From NCBI GenBank assembly GCA_000320545.1, contig ADNK01002891.1:1-53976 (forward strand): a stretch of 53,976 nt of DNA. Direction: 5' to 3'. The position numbers were made by a program, and so were the translations under genes. This DNA is from Bigelowiella natans CCMP2755 (Eukaryota > Protista > Cercozoa). This document shows, piece by piece, positions 11,190-48,069 of this stretch. How positions within the stretch are numbered: the stretch's first letter is position 1; each line of letters starts with the position of its first letter. The notes beneath the pieces were generated by a model. It did no database searches. It worked only from the letters and a program-made list of their open reading frames with translations, and was not told where the DNA came from.

Positions 11190-11832
11190 CCGACCACGAG
11201 TCATTGATAGCGAATGCTGTTTGTGTATGCTCGTACTTTTGTAGATACTAACTCTATCTTCCCGACGGGGGGCACATGAAAATGAAAAAGACCTTGAATC
11301 ATCTCAATAGCAAGGCTGGACATTGCCGCCAAACAGTGAATGACAAAGAAAGAATATCCATTATCTCTAGACAACGGACATTTTGACTTCTTAAAAAACT
11401 CGTGCCCAGCCCTATTGGTTGTACTAATTGGTTGCAAAGTGATCAGGATGTGTGGGAACAGCCAAACGCTAATGGAAGTACCTGCACTAGTGCAGCATGC
11501 TCTACACATCTCTAGATCTAGACATGTAGTGCAGGTGTACATCGCCAGCATGCTAGCATGTCGCACAAAAGCACTAGAGCGGATGTGAACGCGTGTCCAA
11601 AAATGAAATTTCATGACAGCACATTGCAGGCGCGACGTATGTAGACGAGATTGCAATGCCCACATTGCATCATTGCGACGTACGTTCCTGCAGTGGAATC
11701 CACAAATCTGGAAATCACCGCTGGCTAGCGCTTGCTGGTCCAGTGGTGCTGCAATGTGTTGCAGGCTAATTCACGTGTGTGATGTGATGTGTGAGCAGTG
11801 ATGACAAATTGCTGCAACCGCCAATGGCGGTG

Positions 11833-12290
11833 TTACATGCGAAGGCTCACCCACGCAAAGCTAGAAAGCGAGGCGACGCACTGCACCCCGCATCCACACT
11901 CTTCAAATCCAGACACTCCGCAGACTTGTCTGTGCTTGCTGGCACTTTCAGGACCATCAGCCCCACCAACCGCAAACACCTTGCCATCCCCAAAAGCCAC
12001 ACCCAAAGCCAACCTCTCAGTGATCGTGTCAGGAATTTCCTTCCACCTCGCATCCACGTTCTTCAATGAATCCAGGTGCTCCGCAGGTTTGCCAACACCA
12101 TCAGGACCATCAGCCCCACCAACCGCAAAGAGCTTGCCATCTCCAATGACCACACCCAAAAAACTCCTCTCAGTCATTACGTCAGGAACTTCCTTCCATC
12201 CCGCATCCACGTTCTTCAAATCCAGACACTCCGCAGGTGTTTGCCACCGTCCTGGCATCGTCAGGATCGACAGCCAGCCCCACCAACAGC
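11833..12290 (-). pseudogene. Kelch-repeat gene fragment, degenerate paralog of the 40381-41721 gene
   Basis: About 2.5 Kelch repeats (ECLDLKNVDAGWKEVPD…GKLFAVGG) closely resembling the intact gene. Frameshifts between repeats, no usable start, no Tyr codons; lies in a TA-depleted island. Confidence 0.8.
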
Positions 12291-12621
12291 AGTGTCAGGA
12301 ACAAGAAGCTAGGATCATTGCGACGGGGGAAAACTAGATTGGCGAACAGCAGCAACAGCATCGAGCAGGACAATGGTTCGACGGAAAGCGAGGCATGAGC
12401 CATCATTTCTTTTTCGTTGTTTTTCATTTTCATGCACGTGTTGTGTGGAAGATCTTCACGGAGACTCTCCTTGCGGCGAATCCCGGGCTAGGACGCGGAT
12501 AAATCCTTGTCGCAATTTCCTAATTGACTGCGATTAAAAATGCGCGATAACCAGTGGCATTTTCTACTTGAGTCAACGGCTTTTTGCGAGCAATCCTAGA
12601 ACAATTCGCACGTGCGCCAGA

Positions 12622-20111: not shown

Positions 20112-20559
20112 TGGAACGAGTGGTTGTCTCTCAGTCGGGCCGGGGCTTGTTACAGATGTTGCAGGATGTGTTGCAAGAAATACCCTGGATTTTCCCCGGG
20201 ATAATCCTATATTTGATCACCATAACGTCACATTTCGATTCAGAAAACTGACTTTCTGTTTAGATTCATCAGGTCGTCCATATCACGGTTACAGTGCCGA
20301 TCAAATTCTGTCGAACTTCATTCATGCTGCATTCATTCATTCATTCGTTCACTTCAGCCCTACGACAGGTCAAAAACCAAGGTTTACCCAAACATACACA
20401 ACATTCCATGTCGTTTTTATCGGACGACAACCAAGAAAACAGGGATTTATTCATGAATGGCATGCAATTCAGTTAAAGCCATTAATTGCCTGCGTTTCTG
20501 GAAGAAATTCTTCTGTTTTGTCAGCCGAAGATGGAATCCGGTTGTGTTTCATAACAACA

Positions 20560-21100
20560 ACAACAACGGCAATGCCGCAGGGAGGCAGATGCCACGACGC
20601 TTTCTTCATTGTTCATTGTTCATTGTTCACGAGCAACGAGTTGCAATTTAGTTTCCAACGCTCAGCGTTCTGGCCAAAAACCGCAATGAGATGCTGAGGC
20701 GCATGAGATTGTGAGAGGCTGCCAACAACCTCCAAAGTGTCAATGTGTCTCTGAAAGAGTGAGGCCCACGTTCTGGAGTTCTCTCAGCCGTGCAACCGCA
20801 TTGCATTTTTCACTCCCAGTGACGATGCGGAACATGCTAGCATGGTGGAAGAAAGGAGAGAGGAGAAAGTATCGACAATGGGTCTAGAAGTGTTTGCTGG
20901 TGTGGCACCAGCAAACCAATCCGTCACAGTTGAAAGCAAGATGACGGCATTGCACGCCACAACGTCGGTCTAGCGGTGCTGCAAGTTGTTCTACCTCGAG
21001 CGCTCATTCCAATCATCAAGAAATGAGTCATCACCCCATGCCCAGCAAGCATGTGCATGCACATTGTCATCCAAGTGGGTTCTTGAATCACGCATATGGC
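20560..21100. other. TpA-depleted intergenic island
   Basis: Between 20651 and ~21090 only about 5 TA, three of them CTAG (20837, 20884, 20970). Confidence 0.6.
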
Positions 21101-28770: not shown

Positions 28771-29487
28771 GCGCGGCGTCCTCAACCACCGCGAAGTAGC
28801 ACAGCATGTTCGCGAGCTTGCTCCTTCCCCCATCCCTTCTGCAGCAAGCGCGTTCTTTGAAGATCCAGCTCTAGGATAAGTGCAGGATGCTCCCTTGCTA
28901 TGACGACTCACACCAGGAAAACATCTGTAAAAAAGGCGAGGCAGTGCGCAGCATCCTCCATGGTTCGTGTGCGCGCGTCGTAAGCAGACTTCCATGTCTA
29001 GATGTATAGCGGTGGGAATCAAGACCTGATGTGCATCAAAGCCTCGGTTTGACAGAATGCACGCGACACGTACTAGCGTACTACGTGGTAGCTTCATCTA
29101 CCCAGGCTGCCATTTTTGATTTGCGAGATTATCTCTGTCAAATATACAAACTGCGCGCTGCAGCACGTACGATTTAGCCGAAGCGCTATATATATGATAT
29201 TGGAACATGAACAACGCAAAAACCGCAGTATATCAGCAGTGCTGTAGGCTAAGGGCCTCTGCAACGAAGCCTGCAGGCAGCGTATGCATTCGCAAATATA
29301 GCATTGGAGGGCAGCGTTAGCATTTGAATTAAAATGCATAAGTAAGCTAATATGTACAGCAAAAAACGCCCAGTGAGAGTGCACGGCGCGGCAGCAAGCT
29401 AGTAGCAAGACACACAACGGTGTATGCTCATGATATGTGCTGCGATTGCGCGTACTGCCAAATAATTCATCATCTGTATATACTACA

Positions 29488-29520
<33 letters not shown>

Positions 29521-29525
<5 letters not shown>

Positions 29526-29573
29526 GCTACATCAGGATGACCATTGAAAAAATTTAATTCTTCATTACATCCG

Positions 29574-29578
<5 letters not shown>
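29521..29578 (-). mobile_element. Solo terminus of the 449-757 TIR element, embedded in (TA)n
   Basis: Reverse complement TGAGACGGATGTAATGAAGAATTAAATTTTTTCAATGGTCATCCTGATGTAGCTGTGC is nearly identical to 450-507; flanked by (TA)n at 29491-29520 and 29579-29608. Confidence 0.8.
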
Positions 29579-29611
<33 letters not shown>

Positions 29612-29857: not shown

Positions 29858-31755
29858 TCATCTACGCACACGCTTTGCATATTGCATCGACGGTGATGAG
29901 GAAGAATGCATATCGTCTCTCTTCGCTGTCTCCAGGCGCTCAACTAGCTCGCGGTTATAGAAGAGGACTTCCTTCACGATGAGGTCTTTTATCATGGACT
30001 TCGTGATCGGCGCGTCCTCAAACTCGAAGAATATAGGATCCCTCGTTGATTTCATTTCCGCTGCCGCGTCCCTCACGTCGCGCAGGTACTCGTGGTTAAG
30101 AGCCTCGCGAGCGGTTATGCGCTCGTGAGGGTTAAATCGCAGCATCTTCTTCAGAAGATCCAAGCTGAGCGAACAATGCGGAGTCGTCGTCATCATCATC
30201 ATCAACATCATCAATTTCTCAGAGGGAAAAAGAAAAAAGAAGAATTGCCATCATCAAATGTGGGGGGAAGAGGCGAGAAGAGCTTCCTTCGTATCATCAA
30301 TAGCGACCATCTTCATCGTACGATGACATATCTTCCAATATTCATTACACACACATCGTCATCATCATCGTCATCATCATCAATCAGTTATTGGTTCTCC
30401 CCCCCCTCCCCCCCCCCCCATCATCGAATCAGCACAGAAACATCATCACGTACGCAAGGGGGTCGGCGCCGGGGAACATCCCCTTGAAGTCTTTTGGCGG
30501 CTTTTTCTCCAACGACTCTAAATACCTACGAGCCTTCTTAGAGCTGACCGCCTGGATATCCCCCCTCCCCGGGGTTCCAATCACATCGAAAATGACGGAG
30601 AGCTGGTCGTGGGGGTGCGTGTATGCGAGGGGGTGGTCTGCTGAGAGAGGAAAGCACGACTTTCCTGGAAACAACGCTTGGCGATCTTGCGGATCCGCGA
30701 AGCTCTCCCTCTGCATGCTGAGCAGCTCCGACAAGACGCAGCCGACTGACCAGATGTCAATGGAGCAGTTGTAGTTGCTTTCCAGCAGAATCAACTCTGG
30801 GGCCCTGTACCAGCGCGTGACGACGTGCTTGGTGAGCTGGTTGGCGACGGTTGGGAAAGGCCCTTTTGGCATTCGGATGGCGGCGAGCGGTGCCTCTTTT
30901 CTCTTTCGAGAGGAGGCGGAGGCGGAGGCGGAGGCGGAGGAGGATGATGACGATGACGGTGGCGCTTTCCCTTCGGACGATTGCCGATGGGGTCGGAGTG
31001 AGTGCATTCTGCGGGGAGCGGGGGGGCCTGCTGTTGATAAGAGCGCAACCAACAATGAGGGAGAGCGGCATCGATCGCGGACACACACACAAACACGCGA
31101 ACGAACATATAGTATACGGTTAACGCGCCATTCGTCTAAAAGCGGCTGCATCTGCGGCGCCCTCGCATATATATATATATCAATATATATATATATATAT
31201 ATATATATACTGTGGTTGAAAACGTCGATATACCATCAGGTGCAAAAAATGAAAGAAGCCTCTCAAATGACCTCTCTCCCCTCTCCTCAGCGGTGCCACG
31301 TTCCTCCCCGTCGCCTCATTGGTCCCCCTCGCAAGGCCAAAGTCGCAGAGCAGCAGCGAGCAGTTGGCGTTGATGAGGATGTTGGCGGGCTTGAGATCGC
31401 GGTGTATGATATTCGCCGAATGCACGTATTTGAGAGAGATGAGGATCTGCTGCAGGAAGAACTGTATGTGGAGATTGGTGAAGTACTGGCTTGAGGTGAT
31501 CAGCTTCTGCAGGTCGGTATCTGCAAACTCGAATACGATGTACAGCTCGTTGAAGTTGTTGATGTCGTTTGGGGCAAGGATGTCGCGCAGCTCAATGATG
31601 TGATCATGCCGCAGCACGCGCAGGATGCGAAGCTCACGCAGCAGCCTCTTTGCGTGCATAACGTCGTCGAATACCTGTTTGGAAAGGAGAGGAAGTTAAG
31701 ACGATGAGGGGGGAAGGGAGGGGGGGGGGGAGGGAAGGTAAGAGAGACAGAGCAC

Positions 31756-31800
<45 letters not shown>

Positions 31801-31803
31801 GTT

Positions 31804-31863
<60 letters not shown>

Positions 31864-33565
31864 TCCATATGCGTATATCCTTTATTGTATTCAGGGCCAC
31901 CGCCACCACCACCATCTTCACCATCATCACCATCATCACCATCCTCCTCACCCCTGTGATTTTCTTGATGGCGACCCTCTCCCCAGTCTCCATATCAACC
32001 GCGCCGTATACATGCCCATAGCTTCCATGCCCCAGGTACTCGATGAACGTGTAGCGCTGCGAGATCTGTGGAGTGTGAGTAACCTGCGAGCGAATAAGAT
32101 CCTCCGGATCGCTGTTTAGCCCCCCCCCCTCTGACTCTGACCCCTCTTCCGACAGGTCAGAATAGTCCCCTCCTACCGTTGTTGAAGCAACAGCAGCAGC
32201 AGCAGCAGCAGCGTGTTCCCTAGTCGTCACAGCCTTAGCCTTGGCAGCAGCACTTTGGCGATGTGGTTTTGCGAGCAATTCCTTGCCTGAAGCGGGATTG
32301 TGATGCTGATGGAAAGACTGATGTTGGCCTTGGCGAAGGAACTCGTCGCTGTGGTCAGCATTGCCACTGTTTCGGTAATGGGCAGAGGGGCGATAGCCGA
32401 CGTCATCTCTATGTGCCACGGCAGTCCCTTCGCCGCCACCACTGCTTTGATTGCTCTGTGCAGTTGTCCAGATAACCCCAACGTGTTGGTGCTGCTGCTG
32501 CTGCTGCGGCTGCTGCCTGTGGTCTATTGGGGTGTTGGCTTTGACGTCATCGTGAGGAGGATAGGTATTATGACTATAGTAGACCGTCCCTTTGTTGGCC
32601 TGGTTGTTGGCGAAGTGGTGGATTTCGTGATGCTGTTTGTAATCATGTTGATTTACCCAAGGGCCTATTTGCGCTTGCTGCTGCTGCTGATGGAGCTCGG
32701 GATAGGGTGCTTGTATTAACTGCTGCTGCTGCTGCTGCTCTTGGCGTGAGGTCATGTATTTTTCCTCTCTTATGGGCCCTGCAGCAACAGCACTCTTTGT
32801 TGTCATATCAGCTGTATTGTGCAACCTGAGATCAGTGTCCTGAGGATGCTCTATAAAGCGATGATGACCAAAGGAGGAGGAGACCGCAGCAGATGACGGT
32901 TTCTCGCTGCTGCTGCCGGTGCTGTTGAATAGGGCCGATGAGAATATGTGCGAGGCTCTCCCCTCTTCTTCAGAAAATTTTGAGATCGACGCCCGCCCGA
33001 CGCACGACATCGGCCTTCGCTTTGTGCTCTTTCCGCCTCCTCTCTTTTGGCGGGTAGAGTGTCGTAGCGTGAAAATCTGCTGGCCAAGATAGTCGAGATT
33101 TATTCGAGAGCGGAATTCTGGTCTCGCAGAAAGCGGCGCATGTCTCCTAGGTTTGGCGGATCCGTATTGCACTCGCGCTGTTTCGAGCCTCTTGGCTGGG
33201 TCAATGTCAATGAAGGAGATCGGCGTGCCCGCGACCGCTCTGGTTGATATGCCTCTTTCCGATTTGGGAAGAGCAGGTGTGGAGTGATATCTCTTCATGT
33301 CTGCATCAGCCTCGAACGCTAACGAAGATGATGAGGTTTGCATGCTCTCGCGTGTCAGTTTCCTGTCTTCCCTCGAAACGAGGGGCTCTGCGTTTGATTT
33401 CGAGGACGACCCATCACCTCCTCCTCCTTCAAACGAGACGATCGTAGCGTCAAGCCCTTCGCCCCCGGCAGGGTGAGATTGTCTCCAAGTGGGCTGCGAT
33501 TTGCAGTCACTAGCGCTTGGAGGAATACCGCCGTCCTCCGCTATTGAGGCCAATCGCCTCCGCAT
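29858..33565 (-). CDS. Atypical MAP kinase with long low-complexity N-terminus and T-K-H activation motif
   Basis: LGHGSYGHV…VAIKKITG|[19 protein letters not shown]…[12 protein letters not shown]…LCDFGLARG…[17 protein letters not shown]…IDIWSVGC…[26 protein letters not shown]. Exons about 33565-31952, 31674-~31280, ~31030-30445, ~30165-29858. Confidence 0.93.
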
Positions 33566-38589: not shown

Positions 38590-40250
38590 TCGCACATTTT
38601 TTCTTTTGGGTTTGTCTGCCGACGAATTTGATGTCTTTCCGATCATGGAATAGCCCCCATCCGTGTGCCCTTCTGGCCTCGGATGCACCGCCTGACTCTC
38701 CCGATGTGTTAAAACTGCAGGTTCGCCAACTACGTTGCGTTTTGTTGCTTCGGAGGGGCCAGAGGTGCGAGTAGACATAAATCGAGCGATGAGTGAAACT
38801 GCCAATGCTTGCTCCTCAGTTGCATCGTGTCACGGCCAAGCTTGGCCATCATGACATTATTTCATTCCGCGATGTGTGCACACATATTCAGCTGTTGATG
38901 GGGGTGGGTTCATCTAGCGCTTGCCGACGATGCACTGTGCGGCGACGGCGCAGCATTGCATGCGGCAGCGAGGGATGTGCATAGTCATGTGCGTGCAATG
39001 ACAGGCTGATTGCATGTCTCTATGGGTGTGGGATGGGCATGCTAGCATGCCGTGATGGCTTTGTGACTGAACCATGGAAGACAACTGATGATCATTCGCA
39101 CGTACGGGTGGGCAGATCTTCTTGCACACGCACATGCAAAAATGTCTGGTTTCAACAGCTTCCCTGCTGACCTGCACACAGCCTCTTTGTGTCTAGGTGT
39201 GGCAGATGACAGTGGCCAATTGCTTGCACACAACCACAATGTCATTAGCCACCTGGTCATCCTCGGGAACATTGGAGTGGACCGTGGAAACATTGCTAAG
39301 AATCCAGTCACTCCACAGAATGGTTTCAGCCGAGGACACACTTAGAGACGCAAGGGTTGCCAATTTTTTTCCAAGATCAGCGGTGCGATTCGTCATGAGT
39401 GGTCCAATTTTTTCCTCAATTTTGAATTCTAGACCATCACATGATCAAACTCTTCCCGTGTGGACATGGGGATTCCTTCCCACATCGATTTCCCCCAGGG
39501 CGAGAAAAAGGCAATTTTAGCTTGCATCTCATTTTCAGCAACAGCTGAGGCCATCGCAAGGTGTTCAAAAGCAGGATTTTCAGTGTCAGAGTCGTTGTCA
39601 TCCGCTCTGACGGAGGGTGACCTGTGAGCTGCCCAGTTGAATCCTGCCATCCCTGACTCTGGGTCAACTGACATGATTTTCCCCACGTGCCATTGTTTCT
39701 CGAAGTGCAATCCGATGATCTGTCCAGCTGCAATGACATTTGTCCACGATGATGTCAGGCGGGTCGACACATCAAGAGGGACATCATCGATGCCTTCCCT
39801 GAGGTGGAGCTCGGCCAGAGGTTTCGGAACATTGTTGAGATCGAGGCAATTACGCAGACCACCTGTTTGGGAGGTTGGTCCTGACTCTTGGGAAGTGGCC
39901 GTAACGTGTTCGGTGATCAGGGAAGAATCTAACCCGGGCGACTCCGAAGGGGCCGCAAACTTTTCATCACAGTTAGTTTCCGTCATCTTGTTCCGATCAA
40001 TGTGTTTAGCATCCAAGAGTGTAGATTCAAAGCGTTGATGGTTGCAGGGGAGGGGGGAAGGAGAGAGGAGCTACTCTCAATGAGGGTGCAACTCGGGTTT
40101 CGGAAACATCTTTCACCCTCTTTCTCAGCCGAGCTAAACTTGATGTTTCGTAGATGCAAGGTGACTGGTCGCGAGACTCGATTCCACCAAAACGAAGTGG
40201 GTCAGGAACCTTACGACATCAACAAAGGGACATTTCAATGGACAAATGGC
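38590..40250 (-). pseudogene. TpA-depleted island containing a degraded coding relic (ORF 39429-40016 plus out-of-frame continuations)
   Basis: The 195-aa ORF has no Tyr and a segment IIGLHFEKQWHVGKIMSVD with CAC codons where Tyr would fit. No TA in 39521-39850. Confidence 0.5.
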
Positions 40251-40380
40251 CTTTCCAAAAATCATCGTGACAACACATGTGTGTCTTAGTCGGCTGAGAA
40301 AGAATCTCTCATTGTCATCATCCTGCGTTCAGGATCATCCTCTCACAAACCAAAACCCTTCCAAGGTTTTGGAAAAAACT

Positions 40381-40469
40381 ATGTTTTCGTATAAGGGACA
40401 ACGCGACGAGCGCGGCCGCGGCCGCGGCCGCGACCACGATAGTGGCCGCGATCGAACCCGTAGCCGCAC

Positions 40470-40505
<36 letters not shown>

Positions 40506-41721
40506 CCGCAGCCCCGCACGCAAACGGGGCCGCAGCCATAGCCGGAGCCGAAGCCCCACACGCAGATGCACATACGACCGGAGACGCCGGCGCGGTGAAG
40601 TAGAAAGGGAGTCCCGCCGCAATCGGCACCTCGGCCGATCAGGAGAGGATGCCAGGGAAGACTCCACGAGCGTGTCTCTCCAAGAGGCAAGAGAGACCGA
40701 GATTTCTTCAATCATTCCGCAAGGCATCGGCGGTGTTGCGCAACTCGTCCGACTTATAGTGGAGTACGACTTTGAGCCCCGCCAATGGGATGAGATTGAA
40801 GCGAAAAATGTGAATTGTCCTAATAAAATCTGCTCCTGGAAGAAGAAGCTCTATGCTTTCGGTTACCGGAAAATTAGTTGCTTGGACCTGCAGAGCATGC
40901 GTGTTGTCCCCAACGCGATTCCGAATATAACTTATTGGGAGAGGGATTGTTATGAAGTGTGCTCTTATAATGACCGGCTGTTTGTAGTAGGGGGGGCTCA
41001 TATTGATGCCAGACACATTCTTCGTTGCGTAGAGTGTTTGGACTTGAGAAATGTAGGCGCTGGGTGGAAGGCGCTCCCAGATATGTCGGTGGAGAGGAGG
41101 GCACACGCAGTATGCTGCTGTGACGACAAACTTTTCGCCGTTGGAGGGTGGAGTGAGGCGGGGGTAGAAAAGCGGGTTGAGTTTCTGGACCTGAAAAATG
41201 TGGACCAAGGGTGGAGGGCGGCCCCAGATATGTCGACGACTAGGACTGACCTCAGTGTGTGCTGTCACAATGACAAGCTTTACGCGACTGGCGGGAGAAG
41301 TCAAAGTTGCGATAGATTTGGGGCTTTAAATAGCGTTGAGTGTTTGGACTTGAAGAACATGAGCGCTGGGTGGAAGGCGCTCCCGGAGATGTTGGTGGCT
41401 AGAAGGTTTTTAAGTCTGTGCTGTGTTAATGGGTACCTCTACGCCGTTGGGGATGGAAGATATTGGGGCCCTCCCAAGTACCAAGATTGCGATGAAAAGA
41501 CGAGTGTTGAGTACTTGGACTTGGAGAATGTGCGCGAAGGGTGGAAAGAGGGCCCAAAGTTGTCGTTATGTGGGGGGTCAAGAGTGGTTGGGCTATGTAA
41601 TGATAACGGGAGAGCACTGTATGCGGCGTACGTGGGACGCGATCAAGGTTATATAGTAGGTGGCGAAGAAGTGTGCAATGATTTTGGTTTCAAGCGCTTA
41701 GATTTGGTCTTGCCACAATAG
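40381..41721 (+). CDS. Intronless Kelch-repeat protein with Arg/Ser-rich N-terminus (upstream in-frame ATG at 40246 possible)
   Basis: Uninterrupted ORF with 5-6 Kelch repeats (LFVVGG, LFAVGG, LYATGG, LYAVGDG; VE[C/F/Y]LDL..GWK..PDM). The N-terminus has RSRS dipeptides and poly-Arg encoded by (CGCAGA)n. Confidence 0.88.
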
Positions 41722-41749
41722 AGACTTATGTCTATATTCGTGTATACAT

Positions 41750-44160
41750 AAGACGGATGTAACGAATAATTAAATTTGTTCAATAGTCATCCTCATGTAA
41801 CTGTGCAATGCAACGGCTACACCGCTGTGATTATGTCTATTTATTTCTGCCATGCTTGTATGATGTGCTTCATGTAATTGAATGCATGTCGTACATGTCT
41901 GTGCTAGTGTGTTGTCGCGCAGTACGCGCTGCTGTCCATGTACATTTCTTTTTCTTCTGTTGTGAGTCTTCTGGTTTCGTCATTAAATTGCGCATCACTG
42001 TAGCAGTGAGCTGGTTCCGCATAGACAGCGTTGTTGTGTGACATGCTGTGGGCATTGCAACTAATGATGCATGTCGTCGGTGACATGGCACACATTGCAG
42101 TGTGCTTCTCCATCTTGCGCGGTGCACAATCTAGCAATCCTCATGAGAGCTTGAATTTGCCGATGTTGCCAACGCCCATGACGCAGTGCATCCATGCTAG
42201 CATGCTGTAGCGACACTAGGTAGCTCAAGTTTGTCCCCAGTGCTTGTCAGTGATCCCATGATGTAATCCGAGAAAGAAGAGCTGGGTCTTGGCCGGCGCG
42301 CGCTGCGCATGCATGCTGCGACAATGGGCACACATGCCAGCATGGCTAGCAGCTGGCGCACACGTGCATGCTGGCATGTCATTCGTGTCGATCATGCACA
42401 CACGCACATGCACACATGCACACATCTAGACATGAAGCGCACAACGCATGCACACACGATCACCAGCTAGCCAGCTAGCCGCCAGGTCGGACCTCTGCGC
42501 AACGCTAGAACGACATTTGCATCATCGGCATGCAGGCCACAGCTAGACAGCTAGCACAGCAGCGACACGCTGATCTGCACGCGCACGCCGTGAATGCACA
42601 TGGCATGTTTTTGGCTTGCGCAAAGGTGTGTGATGAAAGCTCATCAATGTTGACAACCAGCTAGCCAGACACTCTGAATGTTTTCATTTTGCGACAAGGA
42701 CGTGCCAGAGGAATTGGCATGTGTCAATGAATTGGTGTGAGTCACGTTGTCGCGCCTTCGGTTTGTGCATTCATCGCTTGCATGGGAGTTGGCATGCTGT
42801 CATTGTCAAGATGATGGTCTGAACTTGCTCAGCTTGCATGGAAGCAGGCGTGGTGCGATGATCCGACGCGGCATTGAAACCACTCGCATGCAGAACGGCC
42901 GCAGCCGGGCTGTTGTCCTTGAACTGTTCGTCACGGCAAGCTGCGTGCTTCGGAATTGGTGACGCTGATCGGTCAGCGTGCCGCAATGATGGATCTGAGG
43001 TGCTGCGCACGTGTGCCACAAGTCCGTCAAACCCGGTGACGACGGGGTTGTGAACAGTGCAGCGCTTTGCGACGCGCTTTGAAGCAGCAGGCAGATGCAG
43101 TTGGTCAAAGAAAAGTCATTGAAACTTGTCCGATGGCCAAACCTGAAAAAATGACCGAAATGTTGACCAAAATGTCCATTTTCAAGGCCTCAAAGTGTGA
43201 AAATTCACACCCGTTGTGCAGCGGATGCACGCTGCGCGTTTGTTCTCTGCCACATTTTGAATGCTTTTGCGTGTGCGTTTGACCAAACGTGACATGCACG
43301 AAAAATTTCAAAGAAATGCGAGCAAATCCAATGTCCATTGCATCACACGACGCGCTTGGTTGCGCGCAAAAGCTTCCAAATGCACATTCTGGCGATTCGT
43401 TGCAGGTTTGACGGACTTGTGGCAGGAGCACGCGTGTCGCAGGGTTGAAGTTGAGATGCACACGCACTGTTGCGTGCAACCGATTGGTTCTGCACCACGT
43501 GCAGCTGTCGAAAGTCAATTGTTGCAGCAATGTGCGCCCTCGCATGCAGCCGATTCGTTCTGCATCGAGCACAGCTGTCGATTGTTGCGGCGTTGGGCGT
43601 GGTGCAATGTGGTCTCGTGTTGAGAACTGAAGTCGCATGAGCGTTGAGTTGCATTGTTGCTTGGTTGTTGAGTTGCTTTGTCACTTGAACGTTTGAGTTC
43701 TGATGTCATGTGGTCTGCATGCAAATGACAGCAACAAACGTCGTTGCCCAGAGGTCCAACCTGGTGGTCGTGCCAGCCTAGATTGCTAGATTGGGCCACA
43801 TGCTGTCAAGCTTGCAAGCTCACAGCCTGCAAACCACACACAACACTGACAGCGCAACACATGATGACCAGGGTGGAGCTCCAATGAGAGCTAGACTGGT
43901 GGAGAGGATGCAAGAATGACCATGATGAAAAATTTCGATCACAATGTCAATTCATCTGCACATCATTCCAAGCTTGCAGAGGCTTCAGGGAAGAAGTGCC
44001 ATCATGCGCGTAGTCAATGACGCGCCAATTGTGCAGTGCACAATGAGTGTCTGCATCTACAGCATTTTAATGATGTCACGCAATCTTTCAGATCTTACAT
44101 TCCTCATCGGGAGCCACGCTCAATTGCCAACAATGTGACAAGGCACTGCGCATGCATGTA
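41750..44160. mobile_element. Degenerate repeat-derived island starting with a diverged copy of the TIR; extreme TpA loss
   Basis: 41751-41815 AGACGGATGTAACGAATAATTAAATTTGTTCAATAGTCATCCTCATGTAACTGTGCAATGCA matches the 449-element terminus. Zero TA in 42665-43787. No recognisable transposase remains. Confidence 0.6.
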
Positions 44161-44332
44161 GTAGCGCATGCCAGAAGTAATCTTTACCACTTATTCAACA
44201 TGAGGGCCACGGCCTTCATTGAACAACATGAGAGGGACAACCTCACACCGTCTAGATAGTGGTAATAAACGCGGAGCCTTCACGTCACAAGCTACACTCG
44301 CAAAACACCGCAATCACTGGGTTGGCGCTAGA

Positions 44333-47300
44333 CTACCGACATCCTTTCTTGTCCCTCGCAATACCAAACAGACCCCTGACCCTGTCCTTTGAAACAAATG
44401 CTCCGTTTCTCTCGCAGTGCCGAATAAACGATCCCCAGTGACGGTTCTTCTTCAAAGTATCCGCATTTCCAACGACCCAACACGCGTATCGCGCCCTGGT
44501 AAGCGCAACGTTCATTCGCCTCACGTCGGCCAGGAAGCCAATGCCGTGGCTATCACCTGACCGCACGCAGGAGAAGATGATGACGTCCTTTTCGCCTCCT
44601 TGGAACCCATCGACGGTTGCGACTTTCAAGTCGACCATGCCCCAACCTTTTCTCCGGTGCAACGCGCCAAGTCTCTCTGCTAACAGCCGCCTCTGGTGCG
44701 CGTAGGGCGTGATGACACCGACGCTAGTTTTCCTTCGCTTCTTTCGAATTTCGCCATCCTCAGGCGCCTCCTCCTCCGGTAGTTCCACGTGCTCCCCGAC
44801 AAATGCAGACAGCACGGACGCGATGCAGTTGACCTCCGCGCTGTTAAAGGAGGATTTGAAGTGGTACTGGTGCGCCGAGGGCACGTCGAGGAAGAGCAGC
44901 GGCCGGAAACGCGGGTTCTTGTGGAAGGGCTTCGCCCAGTGCTCCGACGTCACGTTCGGCCCGTTCTGCAGCTTCGATCGGTAGAAGTGGCGCGAGGGGA
45001 ACGCGGAGATCTCCGGGTGCATGCGGTACTGCGTGTCGAGCATCGAGACGGGGTGACCCCCCCTCACCAGCCTCTCGAATAGAGACTGCTCGTACAGACG
45101 CGCATTGGAACTGGCCATCTGCACGGTGGCCGGCAGCTGCTGTGGGTCGCCGATCAGCACGCACCGCCCCGTCTGGTGCTGCAGCGCCACGAGCGTCGAG
45201 AGCTCCACGCTCTGCGCGGCCTCGTCGACCAGGATGTAGTCCCAGGGGCGCTGCCGTTTCCTCATGAGCTCGCTGCCGGCAGCGCTCAGCGTGCAAAAGA
45301 CAATCTCCGCCTCGTCTAGGAAGGACACCTGCAGGGCATTCTTCACGAGGGCGGAGCACACTTGATCGCGCGTCTTCGCCGCCAGGCTAAGGCTCTCTCG
45401 GCTCGCGCTCGGATCCCCACGTCTACGGTGGGAAGAAGAGCCGTATTTCTCCGTCGGCGCTGTGGCCACGAGCTTGTGCCGCTCTTGATACAACTGCGCG
45501 TAGCGAAGTTGCTCCATGAAGTGGGCCATGTGCTTCTTGAGCTCCTCCACCTGCTGGAACGAAGGGTGCTGCGGCGAGAGCTCCACGCTCCCCCACTTCT
45601 CCTCGGTCAGCAGCTTCCAGGGCTGAGGAGGTCTGCCCACCCTCGCGTGCTGCTTGGTGATCTCCGCGTTGTACCATTTCATGAACTCGACGGCGGTGGC
45701 TTTGAGTTTCCCCAGGCTCTTCTTGATCCTGAGCATATCCGCTTGCGAGGTCTTCACCTGCTCCGCGCACGCTCGCCTTCCTTTCCGCATGATGCCATCC
45801 ACCTGCGCGTCGAGCGACACCGTGCCCCACATGGAGGCGTTGCCGCTCTCTTTCCTCTCTTTGCCAATCCGCAGAATGTTGGGCTGGTAGCGGATGTTCT
45901 CCCCATCCATGAACTGCTGCTGCAGCACCCTCCGCGCCAACTCGTCCACCGCGGCGTTGGAGGGGGCGCAAACGAGTATGTGCGGCTTGGGGCTGACAAC
46001 GATCTCCCCCCCCTCCGTGCTCTCTAACGCCTTCAAGATATCGCTCAGCGACACGGCGCGAGGCGCAGCTCTCGACAACTGCGGCCTGGCCGAGGAGGAG
46101 GAGGAGGAGGAGGAAGAAGAAGAAGGAACTCCGGTCTTTGAAGGAATCATGCCTGCTTTCACGAGGAGGCGCTGCTCGGAATCATACGCTCTCTTCCGGA
46201 CGCTCTGCCAGGTTTTCTTCACCAGCGTGCGGTAGTATGTCTGGAACCGTGAGAGATGAAAAGCGTTTAACAGCTCGACGGCCGTGCGCGTTTTCCCAGT
46301 CCCCGGAGGGCCTTGTAGCAGGGTGAATGGACGCCCCTCCATCGCTGCCTTCACCGCGCCGTGCTGCGAGCTGTTAAGGACGTGACTCAGCCTTTCGGAG
46401 AACTTCTCTGGTAGCTGCAAATCCATGGAGCTGGCATCGTCACCATTGTCGCTGCTGCTGCTGCTGCTGCTGATTCCTGAGCGCGAGGGCGGGACCGACG
46501 TTCGAGGGTCTAGTATCTGCTTGGAAAGCGTGGCGCTGCCAACGTTGCACAACGCGAAATACTCGCGCACCGTTGTGACGACGTGGCTTAGCGCCGCGAC
46601 GAAGAACCTCGTCGTTTTCTTGCCCCGCCTCTCCCTCTCCGCCGCAAGCAGCGTCTCGCGCATGGCGAGAAGGCGCTCGTAGTTATCCTTCGGCGTGTGG
46701 GCGGCGGTGCTGCCGAGCGGCAAATCCTTCCCCGAGCTATCTATCAAGGGTACTACCAGCTGGATCTTGAGGCTCGATTGGCTGCTTTGTACGATGTGGC
46801 ACAGTGCGAACGCCTCTGGGAGGGAACGCTTACGCGGCCGCTGACGGCGGCGTTTTTTGCCGGGTTTCGCGGAGTGGTCCTCTTCGTTTGCCCCCCTGCC
46901 GCTCTGGGGGTGCTCGATAGAAATCACGCCAAAGCACCCCGCAGCGTCTCGATACCCCTTCATCATTCTCCCGTCGTAGAGCTTCACGTAAGTGATCTTC
47001 GTTTCCGAGTTCGCCTCGACGGAGTCGACGGCCATGGAGGATGCAATGCTGTACTTGTCTAAGCTCTCCAGAGCAGCCCTGATCTCCGCTCTGGTGTTCT
47101 CCATCAATAGATCGTGAAAAACGTCGGTGTAGGCCTGTGGACTATTATACCGGGCACAGCTTCGGTACCGCTCGGCCTCTCCATCTCCCCCTTTACCCGC
47201 GCTGCCTTGTCCCACTTTCGCGCGCTGCTTTTCCTTATTCTCGTTCTTATCCGTCTCGACGTGCTCTGTGTAGACCTTTAGCCTTTCGAGAACTTCCTTG

Positions 47301-48069
47301 GAGGGTGGCAGGGGAGGAGCTTCGGGGTCCCATGACAACACCTCGCGCAAGAGCTCATTCCTCGTATCAAGGTACGATAAGCTGCCCGATCCGCCCCTCC
47401 TCCTCTTGCACGGCGATCGAGAACGACTACGCGACCCCTTATTTTTTTTGGGAATCCGCATGCGCTTTGAAACCGTGACGGTAGAGGAGGAGGAGGAGGA
47501 GGAGGCGGCGAGGTAGGATGGGACGAAGTGCTTTGCTTTCCCGGCCTCTCGCCGGCCTTTTAGGACTAACAACTTTGCTGGCAATCGCGACACGCGAGAG
47601 CTAGTATGCCTCGCCTTGGGCACCAGCTTCTTCGTAGCAGGGGCGAGTGTATTGCTTGGAAGGGCGACATGACGCTTTTTACTTCGCCGCTCTGCGTTAT
47701 GGATTCGATGGTCAGGGGAACAAGAGCAGTGTAAAGAAACTTGTGATTTCCAAATCAATCAAAAATCTTACCTAATGAACTCGGGGAGGATGGCGGGGCG
47801 ATAGTTCTTTTTCGGGATGGCGGAAGCGAGGTAGAGACCGGAGAACCCGTTAAATCGATGACTAAGCTATTCGCCTTATCTCCTGAAGGCAAGAGTACAT
47901 CATCTTCCGGTCGTTCCAGAGGGGGGGGCTCATCCAGTTCCGAAGTCATGCATGCTTTATCTTTAACATCTTCATTCGCATTGGCTACGGCATCCTGCTC
48001 CTCCTCCTCTTCCTCATTGCTAGAGGTCTCAGCCTCCAGCTCCGCAACCCATGCGTCATACTTCTCCAT
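44333..48069 (-). CDS. SEN1/senataxin-like (Upf1-like superfamily 1) helicase; one 80-nt intron (47692-47771)
   Basis: Motifs LLQGPPGTGKT, ILVCAPSNAAVDE, ILVDEAAQ, LIGDPQQLP, SLFERL, LDTQYRMHP, GVITPY, TVDGFQGGEKD, RRMNVALTRAR. A GTAAG…GCAG intron joins ORF 47755-48096 (MEKYDAW…) in frame to the 1141-aa ORF. Confidence 0.93.

Follow-up and report, generated by a model that had tools for sequence, protein, structure and literature searches.

Between two convergent genes of Bigelowiella natans CCMP2755 lies a tract (42265..44010) that is saturated in its loss of TpA and in which CpA and TpG are enriched 1.8-fold. We consider it probable, at roughly 60%, that this tract is the end state of TpA hypermutation on a silenced transposon nest, brought about when an adenine deaminase with a TadA/ADAT-type fold is recruited to silent domains. 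Coordinates are those of the window, the whole stretch of 53,976 nucleotides that was analysed (contig ADNK01002891.1, forward strand).

TpA hypermutation is already known as a process, and the tract is an instance of it. Mettrop et al. (bioRxiv 10.64898/2026.01.13.699255, v2 April 2026) reported 15 mutation-accumulation lines of B. natans in which 231 of 302 point mutations fell in two regions, a single-copy NCLDV one and a virophage one. Nearly all of these were TpA to TpG or CpA changes, restricted to some lines and with a rate of 4-6e-7 per site per generation; they arose in clonally propagated lines, and a subset was confirmed by PCR and Sanger sequencing. The same authors described 124 TpA-poor, CpA+TpG-rich clusters, found transposon domains enriched among TpA-poor genes, compared the process with RIP and APOBEC/ADAR, and proposed the ADAT2 homologue Bn78255 without concluding on its activity. 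A sequence-only reading of the window knew of no described pathway of this kind, which is superseded by this experimental demonstration in B. natans. No second paper on the process was found in the literature searched.

A 30-base reference allele from Table S2 of the preprint has an exact match in the genome analysed here, which contains one NCLDV capsid gene. The hypermutation of Mettrop et al. and the present tract share the species, the TpA to TpG/CpA change, the genome-wide footprint and the candidate chemistry. Whereas the preprint treats two integrated viral regions and draws transposon targeting from Pfam enrichment, the evidence here is a direct comparison of copies of a non-viral transposon. 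It adds an exemption of CTAG, a second target at (A/C)AT, dependence on locus and spread into flanks; CTAG, flanking context and MITEs are absent from the preprint's main text.

The purged tract and its surroundings

Positions 42270-44010 (1741 bp, 52.7% G+C) contain 11 TA dinucleotides against 97.5 +/- 7.5 in base shuffles (minimum 72 in 5000), in agreement with the earlier count of 11 where about 100 were expected. Observed/expected (O/E) ratios are 0.11 for TA, 1.80 for CA, 1.78 for TG and 0.91 for CG, with AA, TT and AT at 1.08-1.15 and CC and GG at 0.53 and 0.57. The sequence-only reading was right that CA and TG are abundant and that AA and TT runs are untouched, but not in extending this to AT, which is a weak target in the context (A/C)AT. 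All 11 surviving TA (at 42347, 42427, 42468, 42476, 42506, 42544, 42552, 42662, 43779, 43787 and 43892, spanning 42346..43894) lie inside CTAG, a motif accounting for 4.3% of TA window-wide (p ~1e-15), and a dinucleotide count found no non-CTAG TA between 42264 and 44011. The longest stretch free of TA is bounded by the TA at 42662 and that at 43779; a gap had been reported at 42665-43787, and it exists, but its end was misplaced. With TpA at 0.11 and CpA+TpG at about 1.8, the tract passes the limits of the preprint (Rho(TpA) <= 0.43, Rho(CpA+TpG) >= 1.52), and it is shorter than the 3 kb of the preprint's cluster definition (Mettrop et al.).

The tract holds a 405-bp non-autonomous DNA transposon (MITE; 43017..43421, forward strand) with terminal inverted repeats (TIRs) starting CACAAG and ending CTTGTG and a 2-bp target duplication, GC. 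A search of the B. natans genome returned dozens of copies at 91-97% identity, and the terminal repeat has 154 genome matches, giving about 75 copies by TIR count. Target duplications were present in 38 of 45 copies (2-bp in 29 and 3-bp in 9), together with CAC...GTG inverted termini. The termini, TIRs and 2-3-bp target duplications are shared with non-autonomous elements of the CMC superfamily (CACTA/EnSpm, Mirage, Chapaev), an assignment made from the ends only, no autonomous partner having been found. Nor was a cognate transposase found for the MITE; the sole long element with MITE ends holds an inserted Ty3/gypsy element instead. The MITE interrupts a second repeat, of which part is present at 42746..43715 (forward strand); this repeat is ~860 bp long, with at least 13 other copies by genome comparison. 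One copy of this repeat (in L050) is without the MITE at the corresponding site, and in L033 the nesting is reversed, the second repeat sitting within a MITE copy.

Outside the repeats, the CTAG-rich left purged flank (42440..42745) and the right purged flank (43716..44010) gave no other match in a genome search of limited sensitivity. An old diverged repeat (41859..42242; 4 other copies at 64-68% identity) forms a partly TA-depleted transition zone to the left neighbour, an intact and unpurged Kelch-repeat gene (40246..41721, forward strand; 491-aa ORF). The right neighbour is a Sen1/Upf1-like superfamily 1 helicase gene (AAA_11 + AAA_12; 44333..47758, reverse strand) with low TA that derives from GC-rich codons and comes without a CA/TG excess. 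ORFs within the TA-purged island have no Pfam match; they were rejected as genes and are read as by-products of stop-codon loss.

Four further islands noted earlier are also present (1-330, 11380-12450, 20480-21000 and 38800-40000), but their signature is weaker than that of the tract, with TA O/E of 0.24-0.47 and CA+TG of 1.46-1.62 (0.24 and 1.55 in 38800..40000), and (TA)n tracts are still present elsewhere in the window. The island at 11380..12450 (reverse strand) carries a fragment of a Kelch gene with ~51% amino-acid identity to the intact gene, and its 141-aa ORF contains no Tyr. This fragment suggests that the TA purge can extend to duplicates of host genes; at 53-61% DNA identity to the intact gene it was too diverged for a clean substitution test and was discarded as such. 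It occupies 11850-12260 (reverse strand) within the TA-poor island and has two internal repeats. A small repeat family with inverted ends (matches of ~60-100 bp) occurs at 444-757, 29482-29584 and 41742-41839, and beside several MITE copies elsewhere too. The MAP kinase-like gene at 29858-33565 (reverse strand) has microsatellite-rich introns and is otherwise ordinary.

Direction and independence of change among MITE copies

The 45 MITE copies compared were the best-scoring or TIR-intact ones rather than a random sample. Their consensus is TA-poor, with 5 TA in 405 bp. At these five ancestral sites the copies have TA in 62 cases, TG in 79, CA in 83 and another dinucleotide in 1, so that TG or CA makes up 162 of the 163 changes; the copy in the tract is converted at all five (TG, TG, CA, CA and TG). 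Adenines that follow T show A>G in 36% of cases versus 0.6-1.5% for those that follow A, C or G, while C>T stands at 0.9% per site and is uncorrelated with TA conversion. None of the three outcomes that the sequence-only reading had named as telling against its proposal was seen: the island is repeat-derived rather than unrelated to repeats, the MITE consensus has TA rather than being equally TA-free, and the copies do show an excess of TA to TG/CA.

The 45 copies comprise 34 five-site haplotypes, the choice between TG and CA is unlinked between sites, and the remaining columns give a near star-shaped tree; most conversions are therefore independent and postdate insertion. This shows that TA changed to TG or CA in MITE copies after insertion and on either strand. 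Two target-site duplications (L025 and L038) have TA on one side and CA on the other. The double substitutions CA>TG and TG>CA are among the commonest in the MITE copies (11 cases), as expected if a newly arisen TA is soon removed.

The same comparison bears on whether the pattern reflects intrinsic composition, selection (for example, avoidance of self-insertion) or a sequencing read-out of a modified base. The TA-poor consensus is in keeping with such an origin. However, TG and CA are both seen at one ancestral site in independent copies, and the change reaches into unrelated flanks. Moreover, 86-88% of sampled 31-mers of 40200-46000 are present in 14 other DNA runs, so that over half of the island's words must be present there unchanged, and the Sanger-verified subset of de novo mutations in the preprint also argues against a read-out effect. 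We regard an origin of this kind as highly improbable.

Sequence context of TA loss

Survival of TA in purged relative to background sequence (MITE bodies masked) was 0.02-0.05 when the outer neighbour on the relevant side was A or T (ATAN classes), 0.08-0.14 in other contexts and 0.49 in CTAG. The 3' base alone was rejected as the cause of CTAG survival, as a fit without CTAG predicts 0.10 versus the 0.49 seen. In 38 tracts of at least 500 bp without other TA (42.5 kb), 122 CTAG are left, or 2.9 per kb against 2.5 window-wide. Conversion by either route is seen at the MITE sites TTAG and GTAG, and neither half of CTAG is therefore protective alone. CTAG is protected as a whole motif, a feature unreported in the preprint. 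Around MITE insertions (flanks of L002-L050) CTAG stands at ~5 per kb against the 2.5 per kb of the window, mostly as GCTAGC and GCTAGA, and where a few converted MITE copies have gained a new CTAG, it has been retained (e.g., in L024); CTAG may accumulate as a sink.

As survival of 0.49 is far above the 0.10 predicted from the 3' base, CTAG could carry a protective mark or bound factor, such as both-strand methylation; a chromatin-targeted adenine deaminase of double-stranded DNA would then be paired with a motif-specific shield, much as in restriction-modification. We think this unlikely. A profile search of the genome gave no match to the N6/N4 methyltransferase family PF01555, which counts against a methylation shield, and a joint dislike of the enzyme for C at -2 and G at +1 would explain CTAG without a mark. 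Neither CTAG nor 6mA data on B. natans turned up in the literature searched.

A weak second target is apparent in the MITE copies, where 70 A>G changes occurred at 1977 non-TA positions with A before T, nearly all of them AAT or CAT. The rate of 3.5%, against 0.3-0.8%, is roughly tenfold below that of TA. These (A/C)AT changes rise with TA conversion (rho 0.51, p 4e-4), saturated copies having 2.45 events per copy versus 0.5. Table S2 of Mettrop et al. lists four T>C changes off TpA in the NCLDV region (ATG in three cases and ATT in one), whereas the text places all such changes at TpA (bioRxiv 10.64898/2026.01.13.699255). All four, unremarked in the preprint text, have the (A/C)AT context on the other strand. 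Table S2 also places an off-TpA change two bases from a TpA change in one line (scaffold_10 450383 and 450385), hinting at processive action.

We tallied Table S2 by hand for the 3' base of the mutated A, examining the CTAG exemption in the de novo mutations through three-base contexts, and obtained T 67, A 67, C 52 and G 20. A 3' G is under-represented against 25% (19% without CTAG; p 4e-8 and 6e-4, respectively), the background being non-viral sequence and not that of the viral region itself. The table is unexpectedly asymmetric, with A>G at TAG 3 times and T>C at CTA 17 times.

Locus dependence and the candidate process

Conversion is distributed unevenly among MITE copies. Counts of converted sites show overdispersion among copies (variance 2.9 versus 0.94; 0 of 20000 simulations reached 2.9), with all five sites converted in 22 of 45 copies and none in 4 of 45. 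Conversion goes with TA loss in the 300-bp flanks (rho -0.74, computed with a less strict set of sites, the additional ones being nearly invariant), and against private substitutions rho is 0.10. Flanks of fully converted copies have a median of 0 non-CTAG TA per 100 bp over the first 500 bp, recovering over ~1 kb, while beside unconverted copies the median is 4-7 and normal from the first 100 bp; uniqueness of the purged flanks was checked for the tract in this window. Conversion is thus shown to be all-or-none per locus beyond chance and to fade over ~0.5-1 kb of flank.

The four copies with all TA intact are as diverged as the fully converted ones. At the preprint rate TA has a half-life of ~6e4 generations, whereas MITE private divergence corresponds to ~2e7 generations at the baseline rate (rough figures, both rates coming from laboratory lines), and the TA-retaining copies have therefore escaped and are not merely young. 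Conversion follows the locus and not copy age or copy number, which is unreported in the preprint, and the escape of old copies argues for a marked domain over recognition of homology.

The long element with MITE termini provides a further comparison. It is a fully TA-purged non-autonomous element (0 TA in 1327 bp) into which an intact-looking Ty3/gypsy element of 5716 bp has inserted (L031:2688-8403, G000:C3177). The insertion has identical 326-bp LTRs, a 1659-aa stop-free frame (protease, RT, RNase H and integrase) and a TA O/E of 1.13. It matches the 5.7-kb LTR element named by Mettrop et al., of which there are ~150 copies (bioRxiv 10.64898/2026.01.13.699255). Its insertion may be too recent for TA to have been lost.

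Like fungal RIP, the process in B. natans causes transitions at a particular dinucleotide, destroys transposons and spills over into flanks. RIP changes C to T at CpA and needs duplicated sequence, a sexual cycle and a C5-methyltransferase-like protein. In B. natans the direction is opposite, single-copy DNA is affected too and certain repeat copies are spared: C>T in MITE copies is at the low level given above, and equally old copies carry from 0 to 5 conversions. The spread into flanking DNA beside fully converted copies is a trait of RIP that recurs. From this we infer that the process is domain-targeted and not homology-triggered like RIP. A true reverse RIP, in which duplicates are recognised by homology and every copy is mutated, would accord with the nested repeats of the tract, the leakage into flanks and the duplicated Kelch fragment within another island. 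It is nevertheless improbable, given that a single-copy region is the preprint's main target, that the preprint's mutations arose in clonal propagation, that a ~150-copy Ty3/gypsy element keeps normal TA inside a purged host (though it may be too young) and that four MITE copies keep 5 of 5 TA at a divergence equal to that of fully converted ones. Of the earlier proposal that a process targeted to repeats converts TA to TG/CA on either strand, the repeat-derived substrate, the change, both strands and its local and targeted nature hold up; recognition of repeats as such does not, in view of the single-copy viral target, the spared young LTR element and the 0 to 5 conversions among MITE copies.

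In the mechanism that we favour, a chromatin domain of silent foreign or transposon DNA would be marked, rather than repeats being paired. A TadA/ADAT-fold deaminase would then read 5'-T-A, best with a 3' T and poorly in CTAG, and convert A to inosine, which would be fixed as G by replication. A change on either strand would abolish the TA target, and with the target gone after one change the outcome is TG or CA and almost never CG. Transposons and integrated viruses would decay as a result, presumably in defence of the host. A profile search for deaminase-fold genes in the genome gave 6 PF00383 matches and a single PF02137 locus; the candidates include the ADAT2/ADAT3-like pair Bn78255/Bn77986. 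ADAR prefers G as the 3' base, the opposite of the B. natans changes, in which that base is disfavoured. The natural substrates of TadA, ADAT2 and ADAR are RNA, whereas here the substrate would be DNA and the B. natans enzymes are candidates only. TadA/ADAT2, TadA8e and ADAR convert A by way of I to G and prefer T or U on the 5' side (PMC11022790 for TadA8e), as would be the case in the tract. TadA8e favours TA but is inefficient on double-stranded DNA alone and needs single-stranded DNA (PMC11022790).

Several points count against the deaminase reading: the ADAT2 candidate is the universal tRNA editor, a T-centred lesion would yield an identical sequence outcome, and there is the inefficiency of TadA8e on double-stranded DNA. 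It is possible, although we are doubtful, that thymine or adenine is modified at TpA within silent domains and that the modified base mispairs or is repaired by an error-prone polymerase, leading to T>C. In sequence data A>G at TpA is indistinguishable from T>C before A, so the lesion-bearing base is not discernible. A deaminase that reads a single strand would not usually leave a palindrome almost untouched, which we count in favour of a modified base, as we do a weak TET/JBP-like match (G000:C2607:11363-11530; E 0.0014, 23.5 bits), itself partial and below the family cut-off. On the other side, a record of transitions only (162/163) fits a coding lesion such as inosine, where an error-prone polymerase would add transversions and indels, and the strict 5' T agrees with a TadA-type preference.

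As almost all events in the preprint fell in two viral regions, we infer current activity on transposons from footprints. The locus in this window is direct evidence for ordinary host transposons as targets. The process amounts to a naturally occurring, targeted A:T>G:C mutator of eukaryotic DNA, which mirrors the C>T defences usually seen, and a natural DNA adenine editor might be obtained from it. The tract adds a substrate fingerprint, TA far above (A/C)AT with CTAG spared, that would be required in vitro of any candidate enzyme, and the ~75 near-identical MITE copies of similar age, ranging from untouched to saturated, constitute a natural experiment for mapping the putative licensing chromatin mark.
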